A stretch of 64,000 nucleotides of DNA from Ascidiella aspersa (Eukaryota), in assembly GCA_963924565.1 (NCBI GenBank), contig OZ004608.1, positions 16,492,001-16,556,000 on the forward strand, written 5' to 3'. The notes beneath the pieces are model-generated. The model was given only the letters and a program-made list of their open reading frames with translations, did not search any database and was not told the DNA's origin. Made by a program: the position numbers and the translations under genes. Of the stretch, positions 1 through 24,800 are shown piece after piece (position 1 is the first letter of the stretch; each line of letters starts with the position of its first letter).

Positions 1-1029
1 TCAGTGGTTCTTAACCTCTTTTTTAGTCGAAAAATAGTTCAAAAAAGGTCTTTTTATGGTTTATCTAAGTTAGCAAACTGTAATTAAATATGGTCGTTAT
101 GCCTTCGATGATATGTGTATTACTAATCAACAGAAAAACACCCAATGGCACTTAAAGATACTTTATGCAAAAAAAGTCAACAAAAGGAGAAACATTTTTT
201 TTTTCCGTTTTAATGTTAAAGTTGGCAAAAAAGAGTTTGTACAACTGTTGTAGTGGTGCCTAACCCAAACGAAACCATTAAAATTCACTGCAAAAAATTA
301 AAATATTGAAAAATACGCAAAGACGGTATAATTCGGAAGAAACACAAAAGTGGCATTATTCAAATTGGTTGACAAATGTGAATCGGTACGTTTGAGAGCA
401 GTGATTTCTTTTTTATATTCCTTCTTTATACAAGGCCAAGTAGGTTGTCAATTCATTCCCAGCAAAAACACGATGAATAATGCCACTGTTTTGCCCCGGG
501 GGTCCGTTTTGCCCCGCCTTCCCCTACTTTTTTGTTTACATTTTTCAGACCTTATACGGTCGATCGAAGCGCGAAAAATCTCAAAGAGAGTCACAGTGCA
601 GAGGGCGACTTTTGTCTGTAAAGACGCCAAAAAACGCGTGGAACTAACAAGAAAGACAAAAAAAATCGCGCGAAACGCGAAAACAATTACCATTAATTTT
701 TAGTCTTTAAACAGGCCAAAAATTGAGTTAGCGGGACATAGATCCATCCTTGGAAAGAGTGTAAATATATACGTTACAATCAATCACGTAAAAAGTCGCC
801 TTGTTTTTTTGTATTTCAAGAAAAACAAATCGCGGGTCGGATTAAACTGCTTGGTGATCTGGCCCGCGGGCTTAGCCTATTTTGCCCAGCTCTGCCTTAA
901 GGGGTTCGTTTTGCCCTGCCTTTCTCTACAATTTAACTTAATTATGACACTTAAATAATCGCATTTTGAAATTCCAGGTGCCCCCCCCCCTTCCCTCTCG
1001 TGGGGGCGCCCATGGCTAGGGCTACAGGG

Positions 1030-1340
1030 TTATACAATGTTAGCTTTTAGTGTAGAATCCATAACTAGGCCGAATTCGTCGAGAACATTAAATAATCTGT
1101 CGAAATCCATCTGATCACCCTTAAGGAAAACCAAGGTGTCATCTGCAAGTAGAGATACTTTAAGCTCGTTATTGAAAATCTTAATACCAACAAATTCATC
1201 GGCGCGAAGCGCTGAGGCCAGGCACTCTATGCACAGTATAAAAAGGGTAGGGGAGAGTGGGTCGTCTTGCCTCACACCACGTTCGATTACGATTGCCCGG
1301 GAGAGAAAATTATTGTTTGTGATTTTACATGATGGGTTGT
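1030..1340 (-). mobile_element. Degenerate non-LTR retrotransposon (L1/Tx1-like) reverse transcriptase fragment
   Basis: Minus-strand translation RGVRQDDPLSPTLFILCIECLASALR...VSLLADDTLVFL matches RT motifs GxRQGDPLSP and YADD (here LADD); truncated on both sides. Confidence 0.85.
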
Positions 1341-3000
1341 TGTACGTAAGCGCTTTCTAATTGGCTTCAAACATCGCTCACGAGTGCCGCTAGTTGCGCT
1401 ATCCAGGTTTCATAGACCAAAGGCAAATTGGCAGCTCGAAATTCTTTGCGTAATATCTCCGGAAGTAAACAAGATATCGATTAGAAATTTTTATACATTA
1501 CTCAAAGCAACCTAAGCTAGCCAGCAATCAGACTTTTTTTTGAAAAAAACATAAAAATATTAATATTCATATTTATGAATATTAATATTCAGTAGTATTC
1601 GGCCCTTCAATTAAAATGTGCCCTAAGTGACTTACATAGGGCAAAGAGACTTTCTTTGCATCAACGCCTATCTATATATATATATATATTGCATAGGGTG
1701 ATAGCTACGAGTTTACTCTTCAAAATGAGATATGACTCGACCGTCAATTATTCGGGGATAAGTTATTAATATTTCTTCAAAAATTCATAAACGTCGATAA
1801 TTTCAAATCGAGCAAAAAAGCAAAAGTCCCATAACTCGAGAAATAAAAAAGCTTTTTTCATAGAGCTCAGTGAAAGGGACAGGAAGAAAGCAAAACTGTG
1901 CGCCATGCTTCATTGAACAATACCAGAAAAAGGAAGTTGATTCCTTACGTCAAACATCTTCTTCTTGCTGAACACTGTTTTGCAGCTTCTTCCATTTGGT
2001 TAACTGAGGTTAATTTGTTGCGATTAACCTAGGAATAGTTTAAGTGGCATTTTCAAGTATTTTTGTGATAACATTCAGTTACAGAAACAGAACCGAATAT
2101 ATTAGAAGCCTGCCACATTTTCGTCCGGGGGTTTATATTGCTAACAATATTTGGGTTCGGGTGAGAGTCTGAGATAGCGATTGGGCTTGGGTGGGTCAAG
2201 TATTATTATTATATTTATTCTTACATATTCCTGCCATCCTTGCAATTTTAACTTTCACAACTTGTTTCGTTAGTTTTAAAATAAATGTGATAGGATTCTA
2301 GACCAGCATTTAAACCTGTATTTAAAAACCACCAATTGTGTATTTAAAGTTTAATGGATAGACTTTGAGTGAATTATAGTTAATTACAAAAAATCAAAAA
2401 AGTAAAGATATTAAATTTATAATCCAGAAATGGGATAAATATTAGTGAAAAAATTATAACAACTAAGTTAGTTCCATTTTGAATAGCCGCAAGTTTTGTC
2501 ATGTCATAGAAAAGCAATGACTGTCATGATCGAGCTTCGCTGTCCTGGCAATAAGTTTTCATACAATTCATTACATGTATTTACTAACATATTTCAACCC
2601 GTAATCAAATCAGAAATTTTTAAGAAATATAAAATTTATTTAGTAGTAGGACTAGGACATATTGAGAAAACCTAGAAAAACTTCTCACGATTCTACTCTA
2701 AATAAATTAATTTTCTACAAGTCAAAACCATATTACATGAATGGGATACAACTGGTAAAAATAGACACCTATTTGTTGTTTCATAAATTGCCTTATTGAA
2801 TGGGCATCCATGTTCGTTAGGTAATTGACAGACTAGATTACATTTTAAATTTATACCATATCACCACGGTTTTGTGTTAAAGGCTATCTAAATTATCTAC
2901 ATCATACAGGATATCTAGCAATGTAAATTAACCTTTAATCAAAAGAAGAAATCAATTTGAAAAGTGCCTTCTCAGTCAATCTTTTGCAATATCATTCGTC

Positions 3001-3210
3001 ATGAATTCTAATCCCTACACTTGCTCAGTACAAAGTGTGAAGAAGTTGGTTGATGAACTGCGGTATCACCAGAACATCAGCCGCATCAATGTCTCTGATG
3101 CCTCACATCAACTACTGAACTTCGTTTTGGAAAACCAGGGCCGAGATTTCCTCCTTGTGAAGCCCCCAGATAATCCTTACAAGCCTAAGAGCTCCTGCAT
3201 GTTCCTTTGA
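3001..3210 (+). CDS. Heterotrimeric G-protein gamma subunit (GGL domain, CaaX), intronless CDS
   Basis: 69 aa: KKLVDELRYHQNISRINVSDASHQLLNFV..DFLL..DNPYKPKSSCMFL matches the G-gamma pattern (K.VEQL+.E..+.R++VS.A...L..Y, DPLL, NPF) and ends in CaaX CMFL; paralogue not assignable. Confidence 0.9.
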   Translation: MNSNPYTCSVQSVKKLVDELRYHQNISRINVSDASHQLLNFVLENQGRDFLLVKPPDNPYKPKSSCMFL

Positions 3211-3768
3211 CAAAGCGAACATTGCCAAGTATATATACATGACTGATTTTAACAAGGACTGTAGATATATTAATGTCTGTCATACATGTTGGTGCTTTAT
3301 TCTTATGCATTATGAAATAATTCATTTAAATAATAATACAATTTTTATAAAATGTTTTTAATGCGGTAATCTGGATTTTTAACATTTTGTTTGTTTTGCT
3401 ACAATGTGATTCATACTGATTTTTAATTTATCATGCTGCATTGAACTTGCTCTCTATCTCAAAATGGCAAAAGCTGTAGCAAACTAAAAAAAAAATGGTA
3501 CTATCTGTGGATTCCTGTATAATGTTTAATCTAAAGTTGTAGTTTGGTTTGGTGCTTTTGTAAAACTGAACTGTATTAAATTGCCATGTAGCTATTCGTT
3601 TATAACACTGTTTTCCAAGTTGCATGTTTTTAATCACCAATCTGTTTATATATACTTAGGCATTATCTGTATTATTTGTCTGGGTAATTGACTCTAAAAA
3701 TGTATACCTAATTGCAAGCAAAGTTGGTGGATATATTTTTGGCTTCGGTGTGTAACAAACATTTCACC

Positions 3769-3863
3769 ATGTCTTCAAGTTTCTTGCATATTGGAGATGT
3801 TATATCATTATTTGCGGAAGGATCTGGCTCTGATTCTATCTGCGGATTTATCTCCACTCTTGG
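3769..3863 (+). CDS. ITPR: ITPR coding exon 1
   Basis: [18 protein letters not shown]...GFISTLG; GT donor. Confidence 0.93.
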
Positions 3864-6800
3864 GTACTGCTTTTTGTATTTCATTCTGTTCATTACAATA
3901 ATACAATACAATTGCAATTCTTAAAATGTTGTTGAATATCTTAAGATTAATTTGATTTTTTACCCGCACTTACTATAGTGCCATAAACAATGTACACCTA
4001 ACTATAATTAAGTTTTCATTTATTATCTTTAGTAACATGTTGTTTATTGTTTTAGACTGGTGGATGACAGATGTGTTGTACAACCAGATTCTGGGGGTTT
4101 GCGAACACCGCCCAAAAAGTTCCGAGGTAGCATACCTCTCAAATTTGCTAATATTTTTAAGTTTTTTTTTGTATCTAAGTAATAGTTTATTCAAATATTT
4201 TGGTTGTATATATTTTTCTTTTAATCTGTAAACTGAAGGTTGGCAAAAAATGTATATATATTTTCAAGATGTGTTTTTATTGATTTTAAGAATTATAAGC
4301 CTAATGATAAAAGTTCAAGTTACTTTGATTAATTTTGCAGATTGCTTGTTTAAAATATGTCCCATGAATCGATACAATGCCCAGAAGCAGTTTTGGAAAA
4401 CCCTTAAATCTGGAACAACACGAATTGCAGATGCTGTAATTATGAAACGCCTCCAGGTTTGATTTTACTTTGCAGTCAATGTTTTCACAATACTGCCAGT
4501 TCCTACAATTTTTTTTGTTACATCCAGGAATCAGCTAGTGTTGAAAAAGAACAGAATGAACGTGAAAATCACAAGCTTCTTGGCCAGGTGGTCAAATATG
4601 GCAGTGTCGTTCAACTACTTCATTTGAAATCTAACAAGTATGGCATACACAACACAGTATAATATTATGTACTCATCATATGCATTCTTAGTTTAAATTG
4701 CTATAGTAAATGATTCTTTTCCTATTTATACTTTTTTGTTTTTGTATTACATTATAATACACACTTCTCTTAATGTTTGTTCAGATATTTAACAGTCAAC
4801 AAGCGATTGCCCGCACTTCTAGAAAAAAATGCCATGAGAGTTTCGCTGGATCCAGATGGCAATGAAGGATCGTGGTTTTACATTCAACTGTTCTACAAAC
4901 TTCGCTCAACAGGAGATAATGTTAGACTTTTGTTTTTTTGTCAATGTTTGTTATGTTGATTTCAAACATACATACAAAATAACAATCTTTGTCTGCAATG
5001 ATTTTTAATGCTGAGATTGCATATGGTCATCTAGAGTTCATAAATGCTGTGGTACTGTAAATAATTATTTTATCTCTATTATATCTTAAAACAAGGTATA
5101 CATACTTATTAGGTGGTCATTGGGGACAAGGTCGTAATAATGCCTGTCAATGCTGGGCAGCCGCTTCATGCGAGTAAATGCGAACTGGCAGACAACCCAG
5201 GTTGCAAGGAAGTTAATTCTGTTAACTGCAACACAAGTTGGAAACTGGTTCTCTTTATGTCTTGGAAAGACGACAGGTTGGTTTGTATATACAGTACGGG
5301 GCAATATAAATAAAATATTTTCTAAACTTGCCTTTTACCTAAATATTCTTGAAAAGGATATCCATCAACTTTTCCCAACAGGTTTTCATTTGGTATTGAT
5401 GTAACATGTGTAACATTTATAATATATAATATAAGCATGGTTTAATTTACTTAAAAACGGGGAATAAAAGCAATCCTGAACCTTTAAGCTCTGATTTGTT
5501 TAATTTACTGTATCTTGCATCTCATACTTATAAACATCTAAATGACTGTTTCATTTTTAAACCAAAAAAATTGTGAGATGTATTACTTTTTGAGTAATAT
5601 AGAATGTGATATGATTTATTTTTATTTTTAAATGATTTATGACCTTGTTTCACAGGACTGATGCCCTCAAGGGGGGAGATGTTGTTCGTCTGTTTCACGC
5701 TGAGCAAGAAAAGTTTTTAACTGGGGATGAATACAGAAGAAACCTTCATGTGTTTTTGCGCACAACTGGTCGAATGTCGGCCACTTCTGCCACAAGCTCA
5801 AAAGCACTTTGGGAAATCGAGGTCACTGCACTAATATCACTAAGTTTTTTTTTTTTTATAAAAACCTAAATAAAAGGAATGGGAGATTGCCCTTTATAGG
5901 TTTTTAGAAAGCTGTGTGCAGGGTTGGTTATCATTTGCCAAACAGTTGTTTTGCCAAAGCCTGCATTGGAAGTTATCAAGTTATTTGTAAAGATTTGTCT
6001 GTATTTCCATACTTAAAATCAGGACTGGTTGACTAGTTTTAACTTTGGTCTTGAATCTTGATATAAAGTTTAAACATTTGCTCACGTCCGCTGCAAACTA
6101 CTATGTTAAAGGATTTTTTTAACTTTTTCCTATACATTTGCAAATTTTTAAAAGTTTACTTATTTGCTGTATATCTTTTAGTGAATTGTTCATGTGTAAC
6201 ATACTTCAACACTCCACTAATTAAGAAGTACTGCCCTACATGGTTTAAGTTTAATATCGCTAGTTCTGTTAACATTATTATTTAGTTAACAGACATCTTA
6301 CTTAAATATGTATAAATATTGCATTTAAGGTTGTTCAAAAAGATCCATGCCAAGGTGGTGCTGGTCACTGGAATAATCTTTTTCGCTTCAAACATCTAGC
6401 ATCTGGTAGCTACCTTGCTGCAAAGGTAAAAACAACGAAATTCTTGATTTGTTTTTATTAAACATTATGTTCATGTTGTCACTTACCGTTTTTCACTTTT
6501 TTAAATGATGCTATTTGCTTACAGCATGCATTTTGTAGTGTTTATTTCGAAAACTTTTTGTGTATTGGAATGCTGCAGACTTGAAATACAGCTCTCTTAC
6601 TTAATTAGTATGCTTTTGAAAAATTACTTCGGCTAAATCTATATCTGTGTTGTACATCATCTAATGGCTCAAGGGGATTGTTTACATGAAGCGAAGAGCT
6701 AATTTTCCTCAAATGGCATTTACATTATTGATAAGTTTGATGACAAAAATTATGTCACTTCTCAGCATTATTTAGATGAATTACCAAATAAATAAAGATT

Positions 6801-9800
6801 AATTTCAAGACATATTTTTCGCAGTGTTTTGTTTTCAACAATTGATGTTTAGTTGGAATAAAATCTGTTCATTTTTTTGTTTGCAAAATTATTTTTTAAA
6901 CAAGTGTAATACTTTAGTATCAACCTTGAACCTGTTTTAGACCAGTGGGTTAGCAAACCTTCCTATTAAGGCCTTTTTTATTTTTCTGTCAATGCTTATT
7001 TTTCTATGGTTCAATATAGGACATTACATGTTCAACATACCGTGGCATCCAGTTTTCAATTTTACTTAGAAGTTAATAAGTTATCTACAGAAGTCATCGC
7101 ATCATAATCTTTTTAATGATAATTAGGGCACACTGGTGTGACCCAGTGGCGTATCTAGGGGGAGGGGGTTCGGGGTTCGGACCCACCCTTTTCGTAAGTG
7201 ATATTATCGTTTTTTGTTCGTTTTTGTCAGGGTTTAACTCACCGTCTGAAGCAGCGAGTTTTTTCAGTGTAATTGGGTCACGCGTCTTGCTAATGCGAAA
7301 CCAAAATCAAACGCAAAACGCCTTTTTCGTTTCTCAATTGGTCGACCGTAAACGCAGGAGATTTTTTTCTCTTTCGCCTTTTGTTAATTTAAAAGAATCT
7401 ATCTGTTACTATTTTATGACGTCATTAACTTCAGACGAAAAATAGGGAATTCCCTAAGTTGAAAATTCAGGACCCCCCATTTTGGATTTCTAGATACGCC
7501 CCTGGTGTGACCCACGAAATATTTTGCAGCTTATAACTGATATATATCACACAAAGCACACATTTTTAATGACAATCACCATTGTATTTCAAAATTGGTG
7601 GAATGATTCTAGCATTTTACCCCGTTAACTAGGGTCGGCAACCTATATGCTGTAATGTAAATCATCAGACCTTTTTACAAACTTGGCATGAGGCAATGTC
7701 CATATTTATGGCTTTTTTAACTCTGAAGAAAAAATATATATATCCAAACTATGAGCTAAGTCCATATTAGTGCTCTCAAGCGAAGTATACTGTACAACAG
7801 GTTGGCAACTGTTTTCTAGTCACGGGCCAAAACCAAACTCAGAAAGGTCTCTGCGGTCCAAAAATGTTTAACTGCATGTAGACCAGGGACCAACACGCGG
7901 CACAGCTATTGGGTAAATGGCTTACTTCTCTGTAGGTCATGTCTCTAAATAAAATGTGAAGTAATTTAAACCTGATAAACGCACTCATTTTTTGATAAAC
8001 GCTTTCCCTTCTTCAATTAATATTATACTTGATTTCTTTAGCATGCATGAATTTAACCGAAAACAGCAAGTCTTTAACGTTGCTTGTTTGCCATCACATT
8101 ATAAATTTGTGACGTCAAATATTTTTTCTTGCCTTTGTGCCTTTCTATGTGAGTTACACAACGTTTTTATAACCTTATAAAAGTTAAACAACCGAAAAAA
8201 AGTTTGAGAGCACTGAAGATATGACTTTGCAGTATAAGTCGAAACTTCAAATTTTTAAAATAAAACTTTACAACCGTAATCTATATAATTTTCCTCTTAT
8301 TGCAAACCTGTACCAACAAAACTATAAGCAATATTTGTATATTTTGGTTTGCTCAATACGCAACATCTCCTGAAAAGTTTTGCAACTTTGTATCAACTAC
8401 ATTTTTTTCATGTTGCTTTACTTACTAAGTATAATTTATTATAAAACTTTTCATTGAATAAATATTCTAGGTCTGATTAAGAGTTGTGATTGTAAGAAAT
8501 CTCTTAAAAAAACACACACACAAAATTTGCTGATGGATGTTTTACTTTCGCTGTAAACTTGCACAGTTTGATTTTGCCTACTACTAGGAAACAGTTGCCA
8601 ACCCCTGCCCTAAACTGTCCCTTGACATACATTCACATACATGTATAAAACATAGTAAAACCAGGGGCCTACAAAACTATGGCTCGGACTCGGAATAGCG
8701 ACTGTTAGAAAGGCGATCGTTAGTAGAGCATCTCTCGATAGCGATTCATTTAAAACAGGGACTGTGTATAGAGCAACTACACCATAGCAACTCATTTAAA
8801 ACAGCGACTGCTGCAAAATAGACATCACTCTACTTTTCCTGATGTTCACTTAACAATTTTCTATCCTGAAGGTTAGAACGTTATTTCCACCTTTGGGTGG
8901 TTTACAGAAAATAGAACCAAGGGGAAAAAAAGTTAATCATCTAGCGATGATAGAAATTTCCTCCACTTTTCAACATAAATCTGCGACTTTGTGTGCATAT
9001 CTCATTCTGACCGGCCAGTAAAGTCACTATTGTAACAGTCGCTGTTTTAATGCTGTCACTATTTATACAGTCGCTGTTTTAAATGAATCGCAATCGTAAG
9101 GTCGCTCTACTGACGATTGCTGTTCTAAGTTTCTACCCGGCCCAGATCCCCAAAATTACTATCAAGGCTTTTCCAAAAATTCATTTCATTTGAATAATAC
9201 TGCTTTAATATATTTTGCACATGGCATTGCTCTGCTTAATAGGATGACACTGACTGGGACCCAAAATCCAACATAGAAGTCTACGCTGATTCAATTGGCT
9301 CATTTTCTCCCTCTGGTTGTGGGAGTCCTTCACCAAGGCACTTTATTTCCAGCAGTTCTCGGTCCTTTTCAGGGTCTAGCCAGGTTTGGCCATGGAAATA
9401 AACGAAATCATTTTACACTAATATGCAGTCATCTCTCTGCTGGAGAGAGTGTTAGTTGCATGCAACATTATAAACATTTTTCTTACCATACCTAAACTAG
9501 ACTTACCTTCCCTGTGTTAGAGGTCATTGGGATAAAGGCACTAACCATATACTAAACATATAAACATTAACCAGTATCACATAGGCTTGCTTTTCATAAC
9601 CTTTTATTTCGTAAGACAAAGATATAATGCCTACTGTAATATAATATTGTTATATCTAACTTGCAACTTTGGTGGAACGAGTTTACCAAATTTATACAGC
9701 ATGATTTATTGACTAAATACCCAACATGTTTTAATGTAACTACTTTTTAACCATTTATTATTATATCATTAAATAAAAAAATACTAGGCTCATTAATATA

Positions 9801-12800
9801 TCTTTAGAAAAAATATATGATTTATTGACTTGCACTATGAGTAAAAAAAAACAATTGTTTGGTCTACTGTAAAGTGAGGCCTTACTCGTTACCAGGTTAC
9901 TATTGATGTTAAAGTGTTCCTTATCGAACTAGAAATGGTGGGAATGCTTCATAATATTTTGGCATTTCTTTTCTGGCCAGCCTACATACATGGTGTTGAA
10001 TCACTTTTACCTGCTTCAATACTGCCAACCATCATTCATGCGTTTCAGATTAACCTGAACATGTATGACTCACATCCATATTTACAGGGCACCTATAACA
10101 GTTACAATAGGTCACTGCATAGGAAGTCACACTTGATTTTAATCTGCCGCTCTGCATTGCCTCTTGCTTAAATGAGAAATTACATATATACTTTATACAT
10201 TAAATTGAGTCTTTTGCATGACCAATAACATCATGGTATGGGTGTGTACGTTTTTGTACCTAGCCACTTAACCTAACTTGAATGACATTTTTCAATACCT
10301 TGGTTTATGGTGAAATTTGATTGACTTTTACTATGTTTTTTTCCATAAATTTTGCCTGTTTTTGATTTTGATTTCAACTATTTTAAAAGGGCAGGAAGTT
10401 GTTTTTGTGTTTTAAATAACTATAAATAAATGTTTTTTGAGCTGTTAAAAATATTAAGATTTTTTTGTATATATGTAAGTAGCCATGTTGTTATAATTTC
10501 CTGTTCACGTTATTTGCTTTTACCATATTACATAAAAAATTGCTAGCTTGAATATGAATTACACAAAGTTTAACTATTTTCTTGTTTGTGTTCAACAATG
10601 CTGCAGATGTCAAAGCCGTTTAAACAAATCTGTTGTATGTACCTAGATGGTGGATAGTGAGAATGGTGGCAGTTCTGAGAAGGATTCCTCTCGTGGTGGA
10701 AGGGGCAAAGGGCCTCCTGGTGGGATGTCGAATTGTCTTATTGCCACGCCCGAATCCACCAGTGTTAGGTATGTATCATACATATCGGTATTTACTGCAG
10801 GGAAGGAAATTGAACTTGGATTGAATTGTATGCAAAACACAATTTGTGAATTTGAAATGATCATGGTAAAATTTAAATTCCTTATGAATGCTAATCCTAT
10901 CGTTTGTTATTTGAACATTTCACATTTTTTGAGTAACTAATGTGATGAAGTGCTGGGGAAATTTTTATTTTTTGCACACTTCTGCATTCATTTTTGTAGG
11001 CTGACTTGTTTTTTGTATATTTTCTTTACACGACCTAGGAAAAAGAATATGCTATAGGATACCTCCAAATATTCTTACTTTGTACATTAAGACAAAGTAC
11101 TGGCTCAACCTAATTTACAGTGGTATCTTTTTGCGACATCTAATTCGATGGTGGGTCTATGGTTTTATTGTCTGTTGGGAATGGGGTTAATTTTGTTGCA
11201 AGTCCCAATTCAGGCCGATTCGCAGCGTGCAAGAGGCGGTTTCCATCGTTATGCCGTCGAGTCGCCAGCCATAAATTACGTCACGTCACTTTTCCTTCCT
11301 TGTTTCACATCGATATCGCTCCCAAGTTCTAAAGCGGCAGTACAAGAGTTGAATGTGCATTGTCAGTCGCGTTTAAACTTTAATGGGCCATTCGACTTCT
11401 CCAATTTCCATTTATGTTTTAAAACGCCACTTATGGAACCTGCGGTTCCCCTAATTGCTGTTTTAAATACGTGTGTGGCTTGTCGCTATGCGAGATCGTC
11501 TAACAGTGACGGCTCGGCCGAGTACCGAATTAATTGCGCACGTCTTTTGTTTTGGATGGTCGATGGGTTTGGTTTGTTTTATTGCGATTGTATTTTGTCC
11601 TGTAGGCCGGCTATTGTTTGCCGCGGTTATACCTTTTAGTTTGTTTACACAGCGAACATACTGAGGATTGCTGACCTCTGAAAGGCCAAACACTGGTCTT
11701 TATCGTTGTACACCGATCCCCGAATTCGACATTTACAGCGTATAGCAACATCTACTGCAATTACCCGAGCGAATGTTTTCTTAGCAAAATAATGCACCCA
11801 TCGCATGCTTCAATGTAAACTGAGCTGAGACAACCAAACGCGCTTCGCGCAAATCATAACACTAGAAGTTTTTCGTTGTTTTTTTCGAATAAACAAACTT
11901 TACCCTGTTTTTATTGTTACTAGGCCACATAACAGTAATTGTATCCAGGTAGACCTTAAAACAGTAAAACTGTCGAAAACTCGTGTAAACGTATTAAATC
12001 CACTGATTCGCGTCCTATCTGCAGATCCATTTTCGAACTTGACCCTACTTCACTGACCAAATCCGATGCATTGGTGCCATCCAACTCTTACGTGCGACTC
12101 AAGCACCTGTGCACCGATACCTGGGTCCACTCCACCACCATTCCAATCGACAAAGAGGAAGACCGACCAGTTATGCTTAAGGTATGTTTAGGCTTTCGTT
12201 TTGGCACGTGCGCGACAGGTCACGTGTTTAGTTTTGCATTTAAATTTGCACCCGAGCAATAAATAGTGTCAACGTACACGGTTATTACCTTTCTCAACCT
12301 TCCATCGTACAGTAGTTAAATCATAGATCATTTAATTACGAAAAAACGAACCCTGTTGTTAATGTGGTCGCTGTTTCATATTTTTTAACTGCATGAGAAC
12401 CAACACTTGTAACTTTTAAACGATGAACAATATTTTGGCTACAGTAAAGCGGTGTGTTGACACAGTTGATCGATAATACAGATCTGCTTGTTTTCACGAC
12501 GTGTTTCGATTGTATCTCTAATACAATTTGAACCGACATTTAAAATTTGGGTCGTTTGCCATTGTTCAATTGTTGTGATTTTTAAGGCGACAACCGTGTA
12601 CTGTTTTATACGCCACTGTGGTAAACATTTTTGTACATTCTGCCATCACTGATAAAGTTGCGCAAAACCTATATAATTCATCCCGCTAATGTCGTCAACT
12701 TAAAAAAATATCATTACCTTTCTAATAATTTTGTTACAAATAATTTAAACACAATGCTATTCACTTTATCAAAACTCAAATAAACTTATAGAATGTATCC

Positions 12801-15800: not shown

Positions 15801-18800
15801 TGACTAGAGAAACGCTGTTTTATGCGCATAGTGACTGCGCGACTTCTTGCACGAAACCTTAGTTTAGACAGCTTGATATTTTGTTGTGGGAACACACAAT
15901 AAGACCCCAAAAGCAACAATACCTAAAGCAAAAAATCTATAATACCATAGTATGAAGACCAACGACATATTAAAGTTAAAAACGCAGTAATTTCCACGAC
16001 AGAATAGGAAACGATATTGTCTGATTAAGATAATACACAGACTTGGACAACTAGATTTGTTTTAGCATTTTTTTTTTTGATGCCTTTTAGCATAGCATAT
16101 GCTTTTCAGACGGCGAAAATTACGTTTCAACCAAAGCGTTTGAATTCAAATTCTTTGTTTTGGTTAAGAGACTAAAGACTAAAAATGCCGTTGGACAAAG
16201 TAGCATTTTTGGTAAAATCCGAATTAGATTAGAACTAGAATTAGAGCGCACAAGCAATGCACAAATTAGATTAGAATTAGCTGCAATTTGCTATAATTCA
16301 TTGAATTAGAAAACTAGAATTATCTAGTTGTCCAAGTCTGGGACGATCGCGGACCATCGGTTTGGCATCGACCGTTTTGGTGTCGACGTTTTGGCGCCCT
16401 AGTTTGAACGGCCTCGTTAAGGCACCGCTGTTTTGGCACCGGATTTTTTATGATATTCTTATTTCTGGAGTCGTTTGTTATGTGGTATAAAACTATCCAA
16501 CAATCCTGTAGAATTGCGCCGATATTCGAAAGGTCATACTTCTGTTTAAGCTTCAAACATGTTTCACAGAATTTGGAAGCCTTTGTGTTCTCGTGTTATG
16601 TCCAAAAACAGCTATCACAAACACAAGTATTTTATTTATATGTTTTTAAAGCAGCTCTTTTTTCATATATTTCCATTTGAACACGGAAATCAATATTTGT
16701 ATTTTACATTCAAGGCCCTTTACAACACCAAGGTTCTTTCAATATCCTGGGCTTTATTGTTTATTTTGTTATTTAAACCTTTGAATACATAAAGACAAAT
16801 TTACCTTTATTAAATTTTGACCAGATTTCTCGACTACCTGGCCGATCTGTGCGTCACCAACAAGCAAGCGATACCGAAGACCCAGGAACTGATCTGCCGA
16901 AATATTTTAGCAGAAAAGAACAAAGACATTCTCATCGAGACGAAGTGAGCGACCCGGTGTTTTTTCAGCCCGGCGATAAAATATCGATTGCTTTTTTACA
17001 ACCGAAACCAACATGATTGGCTGTAAAACGTTACATTATATGGCTACGGCTACGCGCAGCGCGGAAAGATGGAATGACACCACGATGTCTGTAATTTTGT
17101 GTAACTGATACATTTCAGAGCAGTGATTCTCAAAAGTTTTTTTTCGAATTCCTCCCTTACAAGCCAAAATACTATTAATTCCTCTCCAGAAAAAACATAA
17201 GGTATTCTAGCTTTTTATTTATTACTTCGATATAATTTGGATGCATTAATCGTCTGAAAGTTCAGTTTGTTTGAACGTATAACGTAGGTATAGACTTAAT
17301 CTCATGTAAAATGCCTGCATTGGTTTATATTTCTTTAATGGCTGTATTTGTGAAGAAACAATAGACTAATATGTAACTATGAACAAATTATGGGCTTGGA
17401 TTATGGGCCTAATAGAGTCTAATAGACGTTTTGCAATACCAATCATTACAGTTAAATAAGCTATTTATTGCATTTAACCGATTAAATAACTTTTTTTGTC
17501 TATTTTTCTCCCCAATTCCTCCCTGGAACAAATTTCCTCCCCCAATTTAAAAATTCCTCCCAAAGTGAGCAACTTGGCACCTCTGTTCTAGAGACTAAGG
17601 AACATGTAAAACCATAAATATAAGTAATATTTGGATTGCGCGGCGTCTTTGCTCATTTCAATACCAGCTCCGGTTGTACTATACTTTTTATTACAATTGC
17701 AGGCAAAACAGTTAAAACGTCATGAACGGTAATACACAGCTGTGGCCTTACAATGCTGTCAACATAAGGCACTTAGTTAGCCGTGCTTGCTTGATACAAC
17801 GAACAGTAACTTTTGCTTGGACGGTAAGAGCGATGAAAGTGAATTTCAACAACCGATTGCCCGTACGTTTTCACGAATAAAAATGCCTTCAAGGCAATAC
17901 GAAACTGTTCAAGCAATACGACTCTCAAACCGTAGTTTTTCGCCTTAAACGCGCCCTGAAAGACGATTTTTTTGCAGAATGTGCAGCGACTTTACGCACG
18001 AGGACACGGTGGTGCTGATGTACGGTGATGGCAAGGCTGTGGAGCGCTGCATCCGCGAGCTCGCCTCTGCCAAAGAGACTGAGGACAAGAAGTGGCTTAA
18101 GTACTACAGGTGATTTTGACGCTTGATAATGAATTGCTAAGCCGAAAAGGTCGAATAAATCGACATCAATGTTGATTAAGACGTTTCGATACGAGCTTGT
18201 ATCATCTTTAGTTGAGGTGACTGACAAGTAATTTAAGCATTATATTACGTGGGACGCGATTGTTATTATTTCGGAGTTATATCGACGGTTTGTTGCAAGC
18301 CGATGATGAAATCCTAAATCTAAAGTCAACCGTGTTTATATCCACCTCCGGGATATTCGGGAACGAAAAATTCTTTTGTGTGTTGGTCACATTCAAATGT
18401 TATGTCACCATGCCTGTGCTTCCATACATTATTGCTTGCTGCTTTTTTGTTCGGGTAATGGACCCTTGGTAGCAGTAAAAGTAGCAGTAAAAATATAAGC
18501 CATAAAGACATATTTTTCTGTAAAGTAAACTACTGAAAAAATGTGTACTTTTAAATATCAGATCAGGTAAAGTAAATAATATCGCGTGCTCATAGTCATA
18601 CGGCTAAAATGTCGAGCATATCTAATCCATAATACAAACACCTTCACCAGTGTTTGTTAGGCCTAGTATGTCTTCCAGCTTACTAAAGCGCGTTTTTCCA
18701 ATTCCCTTTGGAGCGCAGGCATCAACTGGACTTGTTCAGCAAGATGTGCTTGGACCGCCAATACTTGGCCATCAACCCGATCTCGGTCGAACTCACCATC

Positions 18801-21800
18801 CCGATCATACTCAACTGTATGGCTGACGTGCAGCTGCCCTGCGACCTTCGGGCTTCCTTCGTTCAGGTTCGCATCGTTTCGACGCCCACTATAAATAGAC
18901 CAAAGGAGTTCCCATACCCCGTACCAGACTGGTTCGCTATCGGAAAGTGTGATGTCGAACCACTAAATGTGATAATCAATTTGGTATCGCGTTTCCGAAC
19001 TAGCGCAGTTAAAACAGTCGTGAATCATGTTTATTGAGCTACTTGTGTGCCGAATGTTCAGTGATGTGTTGAAACGGAGCCTATACCGCTTGATTCAAAT
19101 AAGATAATCATCCCTAGCGCATCATTTATTTGTCGTTTGGTCTACTAATGCAACGTAAGTGCTCAATTCTAATGCATTTTAAGTGTAAACAAATCTAAAG
19201 CGTACTATGGCACGCACAGTTGTTTACCCTCGTCCGAAGGGGCATTATCTTTGTATCTCCGCTATACGCAAAACTAAAAAGTTGCCAGGACAAAACTTAA
19301 TTACTTAAGAGTTTGCTTATGCTTATGGGCCGGCCTCCGTTTCCCTGAAAATGCGCAGAAACGTTCGCATCGGTGACACTTGCAGCGGACGCACAAGGCC
19401 GAGTTAATTAACAAGTGCCGTGAGGTCCGCTGGGACTTTGTTAAGCTATTGTTTTGCCTTATTACAGCTCATGCTCCACATGCACGTCGACAGGGACCCA
19501 CAGGAGTTGGTCATTCCGGTTCAGTACGCACGGCTCTGGTCCGAGATTTCCAATCAAATCACCATCAGGGAGTAAGTGTTTTTTTATTGTCGTGTTTTTG
19601 TATTTCAGTGCTGTCTTTCATGCTGACAACTTACAAGGTTGGTAGTAGCTTGGCACTTTATTGTCTGCCTAACAATGATACAAGTTATCGATTGAATTCC
19701 TATTGTAAGCTTCATGTAATAAGCCTCAACTAGTAATTGGTTGTTTATACGTGGGCGAGCCTAAGCCTTCCTACACAATTCCGTTTAATATAACAGTCGT
19801 GTAAGTTTATTGGCACGACACTTCCTATGCAAGTTTAACAAGTTACGTGTTAGGCGAGTATATTGCAATATGTTAACTGTCAGGCGGTAAACTGCACACA
19901 GTTATACCCAGCTGCGTTCGATCGTAAAAATAAGCATACACAAACAGCAAATGTACGAGGATGTTTTTTCAAATGCTCTCCCGTCAACCATTCACATCAT
20001 GATTATTTTCCATTTATCCGTGCACGCCGTGCCAGCAATGTGACTGATTGACGTCTGTCATTTGCAGTTCTTACAGAAGATATGTAGTTGGTCGTTTCCT
20101 GCTTGGCGGTTTGTTGCCGATTGCGTTAATGTCACCTATGCAAAGCACTGACTTAATTGCCCCCCTAGGCATGTTACTAGGCGTTGCATTGTCATGGGAG
20201 TTTTCATTGGTTTTTATCTTTCTATTTTTAAAAACAAATCCGTGTAGTGTTTTACTTAAGTGGCCGTGTACTACTGTACACGCATGTTTCACGAGCTAAT
20301 CACTCATAAAAAACTTTTTTTCTTCACTGTTTGGTACAAGTTGTTTTTATGACAGTATATTTGCTTTTTTCGTTAACTTTTTCTCCCTTTTGTGTCGAAA
20401 ACATGTCGCTCATTTACATAACAACGTTGCGTGCTGGACTAGTCTGTTTTTTTGTTTTTAGGCGGTAATAATATTGTGCTGCTGCAACGATGCGCAACTC
20501 TGTTGTCTGCACCCTTAAATTTTATTGACACGCCTGTACCAGTTTTTGTCAAACCAGTTTGAAGTAGGACAGCAATTTTGCCATCCTCTGATATGCTAGA
20601 ACGCTAATTGTACATATTCTAACCATAGCACTTGTCGCTCCGCGCGTTTGTGTTTTTGCTCCGATCTCTCATGTATCATGCATCATGCATTACTTGCTGT
20701 TGTTGCAAACCTTTTCTATCGCAAAATGTAAAATCGGCCTTTAACCACTTCTTTACAAGTAAAATTTGTAAACATCTAAAGTGCTGTTTTCAATTCGCTC
20801 GTTTAGTTCCTTGCTTTGTGGTGGTTTGCTGCAGTTCACTGTAATGTTAACCAATGACTCGTCCGGTCGTTAAGTTGATTGATATCTCTTTTAGTGCTGT
20901 GACTTAGGGTCGTAAGATCGAAAAGTGTCGTTTTAAAATAGTCTCCTGTTTCGTAGCTGCTCAATCCAACTTTGTTTGTACTAGCACAAGGGCAACACAA
21001 AATGTTTTTTTAAAACGTGATGTAACTTTGGGTATTTCGTACATTACATTTTTGCAATCACCTCCTAAACTCTCCTAACACTACTTTTACTTCCAAAGGT
21101 CATTACGAAATAATGGATTGTATGAAAGAGTTTTGTTGTTGTTTTGTTATCACGAAACTGGTAGAACTTGTTTGATCTAACAGAAATCCTCATTTAAATA
21201 TTAAACGTTTGCTACAACCTTTAAGTATTATACACACTTGCAAAACTTTTTTTGTTGGTTTGCAGTTACGATGACCTTGAGAGTCGACGCGACTGCGCCA
21301 AGTTCGTACCCACGATGCAGTTCGTCAGAGGCTATCTTAACGGGTTTGTGACCAACGCGTGGATCTTTAAAAATCGCGAGGAAAACAAACTTACTTACGA
21401 GGTACGGGTGCTAAAGGTTTGGTTTTCAGTGGTATATTTAGTCGTGGTGTGCAATTGTAGTTATGAGAACTTTAAATTTGATTTTAAAAGTTGTATATTT
21501 GCGTTTGTTTTAAACACAGAAGATAATAATTTTTAATTTTGTATTTTTTTGGTCGGCCTGGTTAAACTATTTTTATGAATATTTAACAGCCATAGCTCAT
21601 GTTGTATAAATAAAATGGGATATTTTTAGATTGTAATGGACTTATGCAAGGCTAGTATTCTATTGGGTTGTGTGACGTCGCAATATATAACAAGTTAATT
21701 TTAGCGCATGGGTTTTACTTGCGCCTTTTTGTAATAGCATTAACTTCACAGCAATCAACCTATTATCAAGCTGTTCAAATAAATGACCGCTCTAAGCGAG

Positions 21801-24800
21801 TAAAAACCCAATAAAAATCACTTTTTATCGAATCTTGAGGGTAAGTTTTGTAACTAAGAAATTTTCTAACAGTTTTTATCGTCATTATACTCATGTTTAT
21901 AAAATCTACACCTTTTCAAAAAATGTGCCGAGAATTGTGCAAAACAACCAAAAAGTTTGGTGCGATGTAATTTTAAGGATTTAACATTATTTATTTGCTT
22001 CGCTGTAGTGTTTTTTACTTAATATTTTTTGTTCAGGTGTCTATTTATTTACTTTTAATTGCATGTTAAAACATAAGACGATAGGAGGGAGTTTTTAACG
22101 TCTACCATGAGGTGAATTGAGGAAAAAATATTGGAAAAAACTTGTTTTACCACTTAGCTTTTGTCCAACGTAATAAGCGTTTTGTTAAGTTTACAAAAAG
22201 GCACGATTTAATCTATAATGTGAAATTAAACGGTACAACAGTAATGGCGTCGTTTACAAGTTAAATTTGTATTGCCACTATATTCGGCTATAAACCCTAG
22301 CATATATTCTGCGTGTTATGGTGCTTAAATATCTCTTGTTAAATTTTTTTATTATTTTGCTTGCCTCACAAAGGGGTACGACAGCTCAGAGTTTAGTTAC
22401 CATGTGAGTACTGTAGAATGCCTTGTAATTCGTTTGCACGCTTGTAAGGAAATGATGAGCCACTGTAGCATAAAAACGCTTTGTTGATGTTGCTGTAGCC
22501 TTAAATGTTTCTTACTTTTAAGTCGGTAACACTATGTATACTTCAAAAATCAAGAAAACAACAAAGCAAAATTATTTTCAAATTAAGTCATTAAGTTCAA
22601 TGTATAGGTCTAATGAAACATGGTGGTAATAAAATTGTTTTTTTTTGTATTGAAATTAGCAGCCACACCATCAACGTGAAATCGCAAAACCCACATTAAA
22701 ATGATTTGATGAGCTAGATTTTAGATACTAGATTACTACAATTTTATTTAGCCACATCGGAGTGTACTACGGGTCATTTTTGTTCACTATTTCCTCAATG
22801 GGATTTCGGTACCCACGACATTTTTGTTTTGGTAAATGTGTTTACACCGCTTAAAGTGTGTTGTTGCAAATCGATCACTCACAACTGCAAAGTTTGTTAT
22901 ATGCACAAACATCGATAAAAGTTCCTCAGATTTATAACCATCTACTTGAATCGAAAATGCCAGTTGTAAAAGCGCAAACTAATTTGGCGCTGTTTATTGT
23001 TGTATTTTGCATGCTTGTGAATAACACAACAATGTCGAAGGGATTTACGAACCCGAGTGAGAAACTCGGAGTTATCCTGGTTATCTTGTAGCATCCACCG
23101 CATAGCATGAGATTGCACATTTAATGGAAATAAAACTAGAACGCCATATTTTGTTAAAAGAAAAACAGATCCGGGATGTAATTAACTAACAGTCTTGCCA
23201 ACATTTGATGATGTTCTATTACCTGTTAAAAAGAGTTAAAATAACTCTTACACTCATTGGGTCATTTTATATTTCTGAGGTATTTCTCCAATTTATCCCA
23301 GGCTAACAGCATTACTTGCGAAATTCATTAAATATAATAACTAATAAACAATTTACTCAAAACTTGTTAGATCGTTCGGCAAGTGTTACTCAAGTTAACA
23401 AGAGCGCCTTCCTTTTGACACGAAACAATTCGCTACCCACTTATAATATACGTCCTAATCAAATGCAACGAAAAATTCTCAAATTAGCTTTCTTGTTTAC
23501 GGCTGACCGTGCGTAGGTGGTCAACTTGGCCCGGCACCTCATCTACTTCGGCTTCTACAGCTTCGCCGACCTGCTCAGTCTCACCCGCACCTTGCTGCAG
23601 ATACTTGACTGCGTGAACGGCGTGTCGGCCAACAACCTGCTGTCTCAGGGCCGCTTTCATCAGGGAGGCGGTAGTACGTTGAAGATTTTTTTATTCGTTG
23701 TTTTAAATTGTCTAATTGTGTGTTTCGACCAAGCGCGTCGAATCCTTCAAATACGTTACTGCATTTTACTATTAGGTTGTCATACCATTTCAATTAGGTT
23801 GATAACCGATGTTTGAATTTTCGGTAATTTTAATTCTAAACCAAGCGGAAAAAACTAAAATGCTTTAATTTTAGTTCTAATCTATTTAAAAAAAACTAAA
23901 ATGATCCTTTGTAATTTAATTTTTGCAAATTTGAAATTAATATTGTTTTTTTAAGTCTGTAAATGTATCGATATTTTGACTACCGTTCTCGTCTAGTCAT
24001 CGTTGATAAATTGTAGGACACCTTTCTAGTTCCTGTGAGTAGCATTATATATTTTCTTTTTTGTAGCGTTTGAATTATGTTTTCCATTTGACAGACGTAG
24101 ACGCAATCAGCCGTGGCGTAGGCAACATAGCGGTGATGGTGAGCACCTTGACAATGGGCAGCACCCTCGACCAACAGCCAGGTCGAGCCGGGAATCGAAC
24201 CGATAACCCTGCAGCCGCCGCACCGAGCTCCTCGATCAACGCGCAAGACGAGTACGTGCTGGAGACGAAGTTAAAGATCATCGATATTTTGCACGTGGGT
24301 CTTAAAAAATCATTTTTTTTCGTGGTCGTATACGTATTTAACAAATCTTCGTAGTAATGCCAGTACTGGTGCTAAATAATGCTGTAGCTATACTGAAGGT
24401 GCTAAATGATGCTCTAACTAAGGAAACTTAGACTTGAATCAATTGCGTCCCACCTTTTACAAGTGATGCTTGAATTACTTCTCAGTCTCATTAACTGAAG
24501 ATGATACAAACGTCTTATTCAAGATAATGTCTATCGACCGTTTTGGCTTTGCAATTTATTATCAAGCTACATTACAGATCCGTGCATAGCGTACCAAAAT
24601 ACCAGTAATCTTGTTTAAAAGATACTGAACTAAAATTGTCGATTGTTGCAAAATCTATTTCTTTTTTACTAGTTCATCCTGGACGTCAGGCTCGACTACC
24701 GCATCTCGAGCCTCCTCTCCATTTTCAAGCGAGAGTTCGACGAGAACAGCAAGCGGCAGCAAGTCGAGAGCCAGACCGCTCCCCCTACGGACGCTACCCA

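Follow-up and report, generated by a model that had tools for sequence, protein, structure and literature searches.

The closest described counterparts of the locus analyzed here are the spliced-leader (SL) operons of Ciona intestinalis/robusta. According to the available portions of two studies, ∼20% of Ciona genes belong to operons, for which the criterion is a gap of <100 bp, and 790 operons (60%) begin with a single-exon gene (PMC2760879); the SL is carried by the downstream cistrons (PMC1488885). Intercistronic DNA is ≤1 bp in 1128 of 1172 operons (PMC7986045), and AATAAA is missing in 16 of the 18 operons considered in the available portion of PMC1488885. A second point of reference is the SL2-type operons of Caenorhabditis elegans, in which, as described in that same portion, the upstream gene carries a conventional poly(A) signal that a short U-rich spacer separates from a trans-splice acceptor, with intercistronic regions of ∼100 nt. 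Ascidians, in contrast, use one leader and lack SL2.

The pair described here, which lies in a window of 64,000 nucleotides (the whole stretch of DNA that was analyzed), consists of a G-protein gamma (G-gamma) gene followed by an IP3-receptor gene (ITPR). The arrangement resembles that of the many two-gene operons described previously in sea squirts. As in Ciona, the genes are on the same strand, a single-exon upstream gene precedes a many-exon downstream gene, the inferred gap is <100 bp, the leader is the same 16-nt sequence, and RNA-derived sequence is found across the junction. In contrast to most Ciona operons, which have no intercistronic DNA or AATAAA, there is an ATTAAA here (3575-3580), read coverage drops at ∼3600, before both candidate acceptor AGs, and the spacer is probably 12-52 nt. 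The pair would therefore fall in the minority class of operons with a spacer, 44 of 1172 in Ciona (PMC7986045). The order of poly(A) signal, U-rich spacer, and acceptor is that of C. elegans, with a shorter spacer. We consider the chance that this is a Ciona-type, SL-resolved dicistronic transcription unit to be about even (∼0.5).

That the host uses an SL, which the initial annotation had given as a property of ascidians, is borne out by the genome. The Ciona-type 16-nt leader has 949 matches, versus 32 for a control, and SL RNA genes form arrays of tandem 584-bp units containing the leader, a GTAAGT donor, a stem, and an Sm-like site. Together with a Ciona protein (H2XP47) as the best homolog of G-gamma, these arrays support an ascidian host. 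Leader-headed retrocopies are numerous in the genome. As for retrocopies of the two genes that preserve a leader-5'UTR junction, segments 2880-3660 and 3600-3862 match only themselves genome-wide.

Two expressed genes, head to tail

The features that define the two genes and their surroundings are as follows.
2001..11000, no strand: CpG-depleted domain that takes in G-gamma and the spacer and reaches 7 kb into ITPR (1-kb CpG o/e windows)
3001..3210, + strand: intronless G-gamma coding sequence, 69 aa, stop codon at 3208-3210, CaaX box CMFL
3660..3768, + strand: ITPR 5'UTR, minimum extent (X3 contig 18)
3769..3863, + strand: coding part of ITPR exon 1, start of the IP3-binding suppressor domain (PF08709, RNA joint)
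4056..5823, + strand: ITPR exons 2-7 and introns (exons 4056-4126, 4341-4456, 4528-4637, 4785-4920, 5113-5276, and 5656-about 5823)

The RNA data are a stranded run (X4), used as reads, and an RNA-like run (X3), used as contigs. All X4 first mates map to the minus strand over both genes, showing that both are transcribed from the + strand. The orientation proposed in the initial annotation, with a G-gamma stop at 3210 and a co-directional ITPR ATG at 3769, is thus correct, as are the identities of the two genes: PF00631 for G-gamma, and PF08709 plus MIR for ITPR, with alignments to solved structures.

The open reading frame at 3001-3210 matches PF00631 with 42.1 bits (cut-off 27.1, E 9.1e-11), its residues 10-67 corresponding to profile positions 4-67 of 69. 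It shares with GNG2 and other PF00631 subunits a GGL domain (residues 10-67), a length of 69 aa, and a CaaX box, the C-terminal prenylation motif, ending in Leu. GNG2 chains are its top solved-structure matches, but the match is weak (E 2e-5). The closest homolog is C. intestinalis H2XP47 (72% identity), followed by two further 69-aa proteins (62-65% identity), and the CaaX box is kept in all three. Apart from H2XP47 and one other protein, a single cluster among 1.84 billion representatives is found below E 1e-10, and judging from these sequences the protein sits in a small divergent group.

At least nine other G-gamma-like loci are present in this genome, and the gene at 3001-3210 is therefore not the sole source of G-gamma. 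The coding sequence lacks an intron that is kept in the same-genome paralog L008. Over 39 codons compared with that paralog, 10 are identical, 21 differ by synonymous changes only, and 8 are non-synonymous. The gene at 3001-3210 is real, expressed, and under purifying selection, and is no pseudogene; it is an old, conserved, intronless gene. An origin by recent retroposition from a different G-gamma gene was rejected, considering that there is no DNA-level match elsewhere in the genome and that synonymous sites are saturated relative to the closest paralog. No fused G-gamma-ITPR gene model was found among 25 matches at E ≤0.001, the sole long match (1964 aa) being a repetitive protein matched by chance.

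For ITPR, pieces of PF08709 are collinear over the exons, with profile positions 2-27 in exon 1 followed by 53-85, 90-112, 114-159, and 161-212 (best 57.6 bits), and MIR comes next (68.6 bits). Exon 1 aligns with residues 5-31 of solved IP3 receptor chains. Six GT..AG joints are listed, five of which are present in both X4 and X3, including that between exons 1 and 2, and one (4637>4785) in X3 only. The end of exon 1 at 3863 corresponds to an RNA joint given as 3862>4055 with a cut at +1, and GT is at 3864-3865. X3 contig 18 matches 3486-3862 collinearly before being spliced to the ITPR exons, and the 5'UTR contains a three-codon upstream open reading frame at 3700-3711. The ATG at 3769 (+ strand) is the true N terminus of an expressed IP3 receptor.

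The existence of a G-gamma transcript was a point on which the initial annotation had made its proposal depend. This transcript exists, with an X4 depth of 59.6 over the coding sequence. X4 depth on the ITPR exons is about 1-5 reads, and the ITPR:G-gamma mRNA ratio in X4 is ∼1:20. The locus comprises two separate expressed protein-coding genes, which follow each other head to tail.

Within the CpG-depleted domain, seven of the nine 1-kb windows have a CpG o/e of 0.39-0.65, and the two at 7-9 kb have 0.87 and 0.72. CpG o/e is mostly 0.8-1.5 in the upstream flank (twenty 1-kb windows to -20 kb, plus 1-2000), with two dips to 0.48-0.57, and 0.84-1.32 in the downstream flank (11-26 kb). An intronless LDLa-repeat 7TM receptor gene is found on the same strand ∼7.8 kb upstream.

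RNA ends and the intergenic junction

The elements that surround the two mRNA ends, several of them putative, are as follows.
2200..2907, + strand: probable outron, transcribed, preceding the 5' end of the G-gamma mRNA (X3 contig 17; its upstream side enters a repeat)
2893..2909, + strand: tract rich in pyrimidines with CAG at its end, putative acceptor for SL trans-splicing of G-gamma, cut 2909/2910
2910..3000, + strand: G-gamma 5'UTR, 91 nt (X4 mean depth ∼41 over 2908-3000, calculated from that of bin 2801-3000)
3211..3607, + strand: G-gamma 3'UTR, 3' limit estimated to roughly ±20 nt from X4 depths
3575..3580, + strand: ATTAAA poly(A) signal of G-gamma, just ahead of the coverage drop
3609..3631, + strand: U-rich stretch, likely a poly(A) downstream element and the pyrimidine tract of the first candidate acceptor (from sequence)
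3646..3659, + strand: second candidate ITPR trans-splice acceptor, AG at 3658-3659, cut 3659/3660

Twelve X4 molecules stop exactly at 2908, where the adjacent depth is 27. Because the leader ends in AG, matching 2908-2909, alignments of leader-bearing reads are expected to stop at this very position. SL trans-splicing at 2909/2910 thus probably makes the G-gamma 5' end, as judged from where the alignments stop rather than from leader letters displayed on the reads. A plain transcription start site (TSS) at 2908 was judged less likely, considering the exact CAG/G context and the presence of RNA-derived sequence upstream. Indeed, X3 contig 17 (1275 nt) is collinear with 2200-3472. RNA from 2200-2907 is rare relative to the mRNA, since X4 depth is 0 in 2401-2800. 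The 5'UTR includes a minimal ATG-TAA upstream open reading frame at 2921-2926.

At the other end of the gene, X4 depth, which is 19.3 in bin 2801-3000, 15.2 in 3201-3400, and 22.8 in 3401-3600, falls to 2.37 in 3601-3800. This tenfold drop after ∼3600 is read from bins of 200 nt, which map neither the G-gamma 3' end nor the ITPR 5' end to the base. Rough arithmetic on X3 contig depths puts the G-gamma 3' end at ∼3607-3615. The ATTAAA at 3575-3580, which is the only AATAAA/ATTAAA in 3211-3768, is 26 nt upstream of a CA at 3606-3607. Coverage thus ends close to the 3590-3660 zone in which polyadenylation of G-gamma had been predicted.

The stop-to-ATG spacer (3211-3768) is 558 bp long, with a GC content of 0.292, four CpG, and a CpG o/e of 0.34. 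No CpG rebound or promoter-like shift in composition was detected in 3001-3768 (CpG o/e 0.34-0.40), in agreement with the initial description of an AT-rich, CpG-poor spacer without an island, and the ATTAAA and the acceptor-like string ending at 3659 are both where they had been placed. The first candidate acceptor has its AG at 3618-3619 (cut 3619/3620), preceded by 13 pyrimidines in 20 nt. The second, at 3659/3660, has the same pyrimidine content and a TAG/G context, and resembles the confirmed acceptor of ITPR intron 5. The gap between the probable G-gamma poly(A) site and the acceptor would be 12 nt for the first candidate and 52 nt for the second, values that combine 200-nt coverage bins with sequence motifs. 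An Rfam search of 1-6000 returned nothing at E ≤0.1.

X3 contigs run from 2200 to the spliced ITPR exons and are interrupted only at a polymorphic A-run (3472/3486), bearing in mind that a contig across two genes is not the same as a single transcript molecule. The acceptor-like 5' end at 2908 and the RNA extending up to 2200 fit a single TSS upstream of 3001. In a dicistronic unit, transcription would start upstream of 2200, and the majority of transcripts would be cleaved and polyadenylated after G-gamma, near 3607, using the ATTAAA. A few per cent would read through this poly(A) site and receive the leader at 3619/3620 or 3659/3660, generating an ITPR mRNA that would start at most ∼160 nt past the G-gamma 3' end. 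With ITPR mRNA at about one-twentieth of the G-gamma level, read-through by a few per cent of transcripts would suffice for the supply of ITPR. Co-transcription, trans-splicing of the leader to ITPR, and the precise position of the poly(A) site are inferred.

The operon with a very short spacer suggested in the initial annotation therefore stands in part: the genes are on the same strand and the inferred 12-52 nt gap is <100 bp, but no SL-bearing ITPR read or 5' pile-up near 3620/3660 is seen among the six loose ends listed per run, at an ITPR depth of only ∼1-5.

Alternatives to the proposed dicistronic unit

Somewhat less probable than the dicistronic unit, and still a serious contender, is a pair of independent units that are packed or overlapping. 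ITPR would have its own promoter, either in 3608-3768, in which case its mRNA would bear no leader, or within the G-gamma gene or its 3'UTR, with a short outron removed by SL trans-splicing, and the bridging RNA would be ITPR outron or harmless read-through. The conventional ATTAAA on G-gamma, the tenfold drop in coverage, and the ∼20-fold difference in mRNA levels all agree with this possibility. So does the start of the X3 ITPR contig at 3486, although this break coincides with the indel-polymorphic A-run. In the available portion of PMC11155486, 9850 of 12397 non-operonic Ciona genes are trans-spliced, and a leader on ITPR would therefore not by itself prove an operon. The median Ciona outron given there (458 bp) would put the ITPR start within G-gamma, and a promoter inside that gene would look identical in these data. 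Monocistronic trans-spliced ascidian genes, as described in the same portion, also resemble ITPR in having an unpaired acceptor shortly before the ATG, AU-rich sequence upstream, and an outron of a few hundred bases, but the would-be outron here holds a complete, highly expressed gene. On the other hand, no CpG rebound or promoter-like composition is found in 3001-3768, and the ≤∼160 bp left for a core promoter is occupied by two good unpaired acceptors. In addition, the <100 bp rule published in PMC2760879, as stated in its available portion, counts such pairs as operons.

Metagenomes and the literature were also searched for the same adjacency. A metagenome scan yielded three overlapping contigs from one organism, on which a related G-gamma is represented by its second coding exon alone (residues 31-69, 74% identity). 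In the 2.6-2.8 kb that follow, exon-by-exon tblastn detected no ITPR exon 1, the best hit on the + strand covering 16 aa at E 0.05. Since this G-gamma keeps an intron, it may be an ortholog of L008, which makes the result uninformative on adjacency. The sequence downstream of it resembles transposon debris. A literature search combining the Ciona IP3 receptor/ITPR with operon, G protein gamma, or trans-splicing found nothing relevant. Within their available portions, PMC1488885 contains neither "inositol" nor "G protein" and PMC2760879 does not contain "inositol", and the supplementary operon lists of these studies may already name the pair.

A more elaborate version of the dicistronic unit is doubtful. 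In this scenario, an ancient, retrogene-like G-gamma without introns would have inserted into the outron of the sole IP3-receptor gene, founding a rare spacer-type operon in which a leaky ATTAAA sets the mRNA ratio, read-through at a level of a few per cent provides all of the IP3-receptor pre-mRNA, and the channel is slaved to the G-gamma promoter, an arrangement kept with Ciona as a signaling coupling.

G-gamma and the IP3 receptor both act in receptor-to-calcium signaling. It is unlikely, and speculative, that this is a selected "pathway operon" in which co-transcription couples the supply of G-beta-gamma to the IP3-gated channel. Apart from the shared role, such selection would agree with the same-strand 7TM receptor gene upstream, and with a G-gamma gene that is old and under purifying selection. 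It is at odds with the ∼20-fold difference between the two mRNAs, with the other G-gamma-like loci in the genome, and with the description of Ciona operon genes as "neither tightly coordinated" in expression in the available portion of Satou 2006 (PMC1488885).

Nesting of G-gamma in an ITPR 5'UTR intron, the second option of the initial annotation, in which an untranslated exon upstream of 2900 would be cis-spliced to 3620 or 3660, is very improbable: the acceptors at 3619 and 3659 would be equally usable for cis-splicing and ITPR depth in X4 is low, but no joint ends at 3620/3660 or skips 2908-3607 among the 15/40 joints listed, no exon-like + strand X4 coverage is found in 1-2800 outside repeats, and the X3 ITPR contig is collinear from 3862 back to 3486, upstream of 3660, with no jump to another exon, which would fit a leader better than a longer upstream exon because 16 nt is too short for its own assembly branch.

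Possible consequences for ITPR expression and ascidian operons

For annotation, G-gamma and ITPR are to be kept as separate models; G-gamma is real and highly expressed, and the 5' end of ITPR is to be sought at 3620 or 3660. If the two genes are co-transcribed, this animal's single IP3-receptor gene would lack a dedicated promoter, and its expression would hinge on how frequently the polymerase reads through the G-gamma poly(A) site. Otherwise, the locus adds one example to a gene arrangement that is already well described, with about one in five Ciona genes located in such pairs. If the dicistronic reading is true, the pair would illustrate in a simple way how a single promoter can drive the genes of an ascidian operon to very unequal levels, and how genes without introns become the founders of operons.

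G-gamma, an ancient intronless gene

Upstream of the IP3-receptor gene (ITPR) lies a short open reading frame (ORF):

3001–3210, plus strand, G-gamma ORF, 69 aa

It scores 42.1 bits against PF00631, the Pfam G-gamma family (cut-off 27.1), best matches GNG2 chains among solved structures (E 2e-5), and ends in a C-M-F-L prenylation box. Judged from these sequence features, it encodes a G-protein gamma subunit. A word-based protein search gave two hits from two candidates, Ciona intestinalis H2XP47 (68 aa, 72% identity) and a 69-aa ENA protein (62% identity), and of 25 hits at E≤0.001 in an exhaustive search against 1.84 billion representatives, only one fell below E 1e-10 (69 aa, 65% identity). 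The scarcity of close homologues in both searches indicates that G-gamma proteins of this type form a small divergent group, accounted for so far by ascidian-like sources. P0004 (1964 aa, E 1.2e-7), a highly repetitive protein of ∼18 near-identical units, was rejected as a false positive, its score built up by a single short motif that matched weakly many times.

Searching the genome (308.6 Mb, 75 contigs) with PF00631 identified 10 loci, 9 of them above the cut-off. The paralog closest to G-gamma, L008 (G000:C2:17432336-17435449), is on the same contig, 0.94 Mb away, with exons as follows:

near 740–814 of L008, first exon
near 1504–1620 of L008, second exon

L008 retains the family's coding intron (phase 0, ∼690 bp, residues 30/31, donor GTAAGA, acceptor TTTAG). 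Its second exon spans 39 codons, of which 10 match G-gamma exactly, 21 show synonymous changes alone and 8 encode another residue, giving 79% protein identity with saturated synonymous sites; the divergence is therefore old and both copies are constrained. Together with the finding that 2880–3660 has no DNA-level copy elsewhere in the genome, this rules out a recent insertion or pseudogene. G-gamma is an ancient intronless gene, possibly born as a retrogene.

Transcription and the spliced leader

Reads of four sequencing runs (X1–X4) were aligned to positions 1–6000. X1 and X2, with unspliced contigs, were taken for DNA, and X3, with spliced contigs, for RNA; X4 is stranded RNA-seq, of which ∼6/100 of the run was used. 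Over both genes the first X4 mate always maps to the minus strand, showing that G-gamma and ITPR alike are represented by plus-strand RNA.

X4 depth per bin
2401–2800: 0
2801–3000: 19.3
3001–3200: 59.6
3201–3400: 15.2
3401–3600: 22.8
3601–3800: 2.37
bins over ITPR exons: 0.4–4

Corrected for intron length, ITPR depth is ∼1–5 per exon base; G-gamma is therefore clearly transcribed, at ∼20 times the abundance of ITPR. All X4 reads differ from the assembly at 2999 (T>A, 54/54), 3436 (14/14) and 3473 (22/22), and in most an A is inserted at 3468 and at 3485. Because the X2 and X3 contigs carry the same differences, these are alleles rather than editing.

At the 5' end of G-gamma, 12 X4 molecules stop precisely at 2908, where the adjacent depth is 27, and a pyrimidine-rich tract ends in CAG/G with its AG at 2908–2909. 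If a leader ending in AG were joined to 2910, the aligner would keep its last two letters and the reads would stop at 2908, as they do. X3 contig 17 is collinear with 2200–3472, including 2401–2800 where X4 has no reads, so some RNA exists upstream of the stop. Rather than a simple transcription start, this end very probably reflects removal of an outron (the 5' part of the pre-mRNA) by trans-splicing of a predicted spliced leader (SL). With contig 17 starting at 2200, the primary transcript would begin further upstream, within a high-copy repeat or beyond it. The sequence ahead of the outron is taken up by a reverse-transcriptase fragment (1030–1275, minus strand, an 81-aa ORF with an ADD motif) and by very-high-copy repeats at 1401–2400, where contig word depth reaches 18,000–32,000 in DNA runs. 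The 5'-UTR contains a minimal uORF (2921–2926), an ATG followed immediately by TAA.

We queried the genome with the 16-nt Ciona leader. It gave 949 matches at ≤1 mismatch, versus 32 for the reversed control. Some lie in an array of 584-bp tandem units, where the leader runs into a GTAAGT donor and, after it, a short stem and an Sm-like U-run; these units are SL RNA genes. That this ascidian trans-splices, as the initial annotation had assumed, is supported by the match counts, the array and a Ciona homologue. Many other copies are followed by ordinary unrelated sequence with no GT donor, and resemble either retroposed mRNAs that carried the leader or pieces of a unit repeated in tandem. At L013–L018 (G000:C1:3.28-3.34 Mb, minus strand) leader copies preceded by an A-rich run recur at intervals of ∼10.8 kb, and donor-less copies are likewise present in L011, L019 and L020.

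The spacer and the start of ITPR

The next same-strand coding start after the G-gamma ORF is the ATG at 3769. ITPR exon 1 matches residues 5–31 of solved IP3 receptors. In separate profile searches with exons 1 and 3–7, pieces 1 and 3–6 fall in order on the Ins145_P3_rec profile (PF08709; 2–27, 53–85, 90–112, 114–159 and 161–212) and exon 7 has a MIR match. ATG 3769 is thus the start of an IP3 receptor. Six joints, all present in X3 and five of them also in X4, define its introns:

3864–4055, 4127–4340, 4457–4527, 4638–4784, 4921–5112 and 5277–5655, plus strand, ITPR introns (GT..AG)

The spacer between the G-gamma stop and this ATG is 558 bp long, with 29% G+C and an observed/expected CpG ratio (CpG o/e) of 0.34. 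Every feature the initial annotation had listed here was confirmed in the sequence, including:

3575–3580, plus strand, sole ATTAAA in the spacer
3658–3659, plus strand, AG of an acceptor-like tract

Depth at single variant sites is 14 (3436), 22–24 (3468–3485) and 1 (3754). For 3401–3600 to average 22.8, depth must hold at ∼27 until 3600, and the next bin holds ∼470 base-depths in total, of which ITPR is expected to contribute 150–400; this arithmetic places the major G-gamma 3' end near 3600–3630. X3 contig 18 (1002 nt, mean depth 276.6) mixes G-gamma 3'-UTR at ∼2000 with ITPR at ∼40 (39.9 in contig 20, ITPR exon 7 alone), which puts the depth change at ∼3607–3615, a rougher estimate that assumes thin coverage of the outron part of contig 17. 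A CA at 3606–3607, 26 nt past the ATTAAA, and a U-rich stretch at 3609–3631 are consistent with this. Coarse bins and motifs thus point to a poly(A) end near 3600–3630.

Candidate unpaired acceptors for ITPR lie ∼12, 52 and 110 nt past that site:

3619/3620, plus strand, 13/20 pyrimidines
3659/3660, plus strand, 13/20 pyrimidines, TAG/G, resembling the confirmed intron-5 acceptor
3718 and 3723, plus strand, weaker candidates

If the ITPR mRNA begins at 3620 or 3660, its 5'-UTR contains a 3-codon uORF (3700–3711) in frame with the ITPR start.

One transcription unit or two

The initial annotation had proposed an operon. X3 contig 18 is collinear with 3486–3862 and then spliced into ITPR exons, and its break with contig 17 falls at an A-run with insertion polymorphisms. 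RNA-derived sequence therefore spans both genes; a contig, however, need not represent a single molecule. CpG composition bears on this indirectly. Of the nine 1-kb windows of 2001–11000, seven have a CpG o/e of 0.39–0.65 (0.72–0.87 at 7–9 kb); values in the flanks are mostly 0.8–1.5 between −20 kb and 2000, where two windows drop to 0.48–0.57, and 0.84–1.32 at 11–26 kb. The depleted domain begins a little before the G-gamma acceptor and continues through the spacer with no rebound. Its edges are sharp, near 2.0–2.4 kb and 11.0 kb, and it takes in G-gamma and the first 7 kb of the ∼60-kb ITPR, the remainder of which is not depleted. CpG depletion in ascidians is generally regarded as a sign of methylated transcription units; if so here, it would hint weakly that both genes share one unit whose spacer lacks an unmethylated promoter.

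Ciona operons are defined as same-strand pairs <100 bp apart (1310 operons, 2909 genes, about one-fifth of genes), with a single-exon 5'-most gene in 790 operons (60%) (PMC2760879). The downstream cistron carries the leader, all 19 precisely mapped cistron pairs abut without a spacer, AATAAA is absent in 16 of 18, and expression of the genes in an operon is not tightly coordinated (PMC1488885). Re-prediction gave 1172 operons, in 1128 of which the genes are separated by ≤1 bp, the other 44 having a spacer (PMC7986045). The G-gamma/ITPR pair would qualify under the <100-bp definition, and its 5' gene, like that of most Ciona operons, has a single exon. Unlike the majority, it has a poly(A) signal and a short spacer. 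An operon is plausible and partly supported, with a probability of about 0.5.

Independent or overlapping promoters for the two genes are a serious, somewhat less likely alternative. In Ciona, 9850/12397 non-operonic genes are trans-spliced, with a median outron of 458 bp (PMC11155486), so an ITPR promoter inside G-gamma would give the same picture. The RNA joints listed include none ending at 3620 or 3660 and none skipping G-gamma, and nesting of G-gamma in an ITPR 5'-UTR intron, also proposed initially, is highly improbable.

Three overlapping metagenome contigs, the only DNA of a relative recovered, contain a G-gamma gene with an intron, which may be the ortholog of L008 and not of the gene described here; ITPR exon 1 was not found within 2.6–2.8 kb downstream of it. 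Upstream of the pair, an intronless 1264-aa ORF (L026:1289-5083, plus strand; G000:C2:16483289-16487083) ends ∼7.8 kb before 2908 and encodes 11 LDL-receptor class A repeats (PF00057, 266 bits) followed by a rhodopsin-type 7TM domain (PF00001, 59 bits), so that receptor, G-gamma and IP3-receptor genes stand in a row on one strand within ∼13 kb. The suggestion of an operon selected to couple two steps of one signaling pathway found no support. The G-gamma/ITPR arrangement likely belongs to an already well-known kind.
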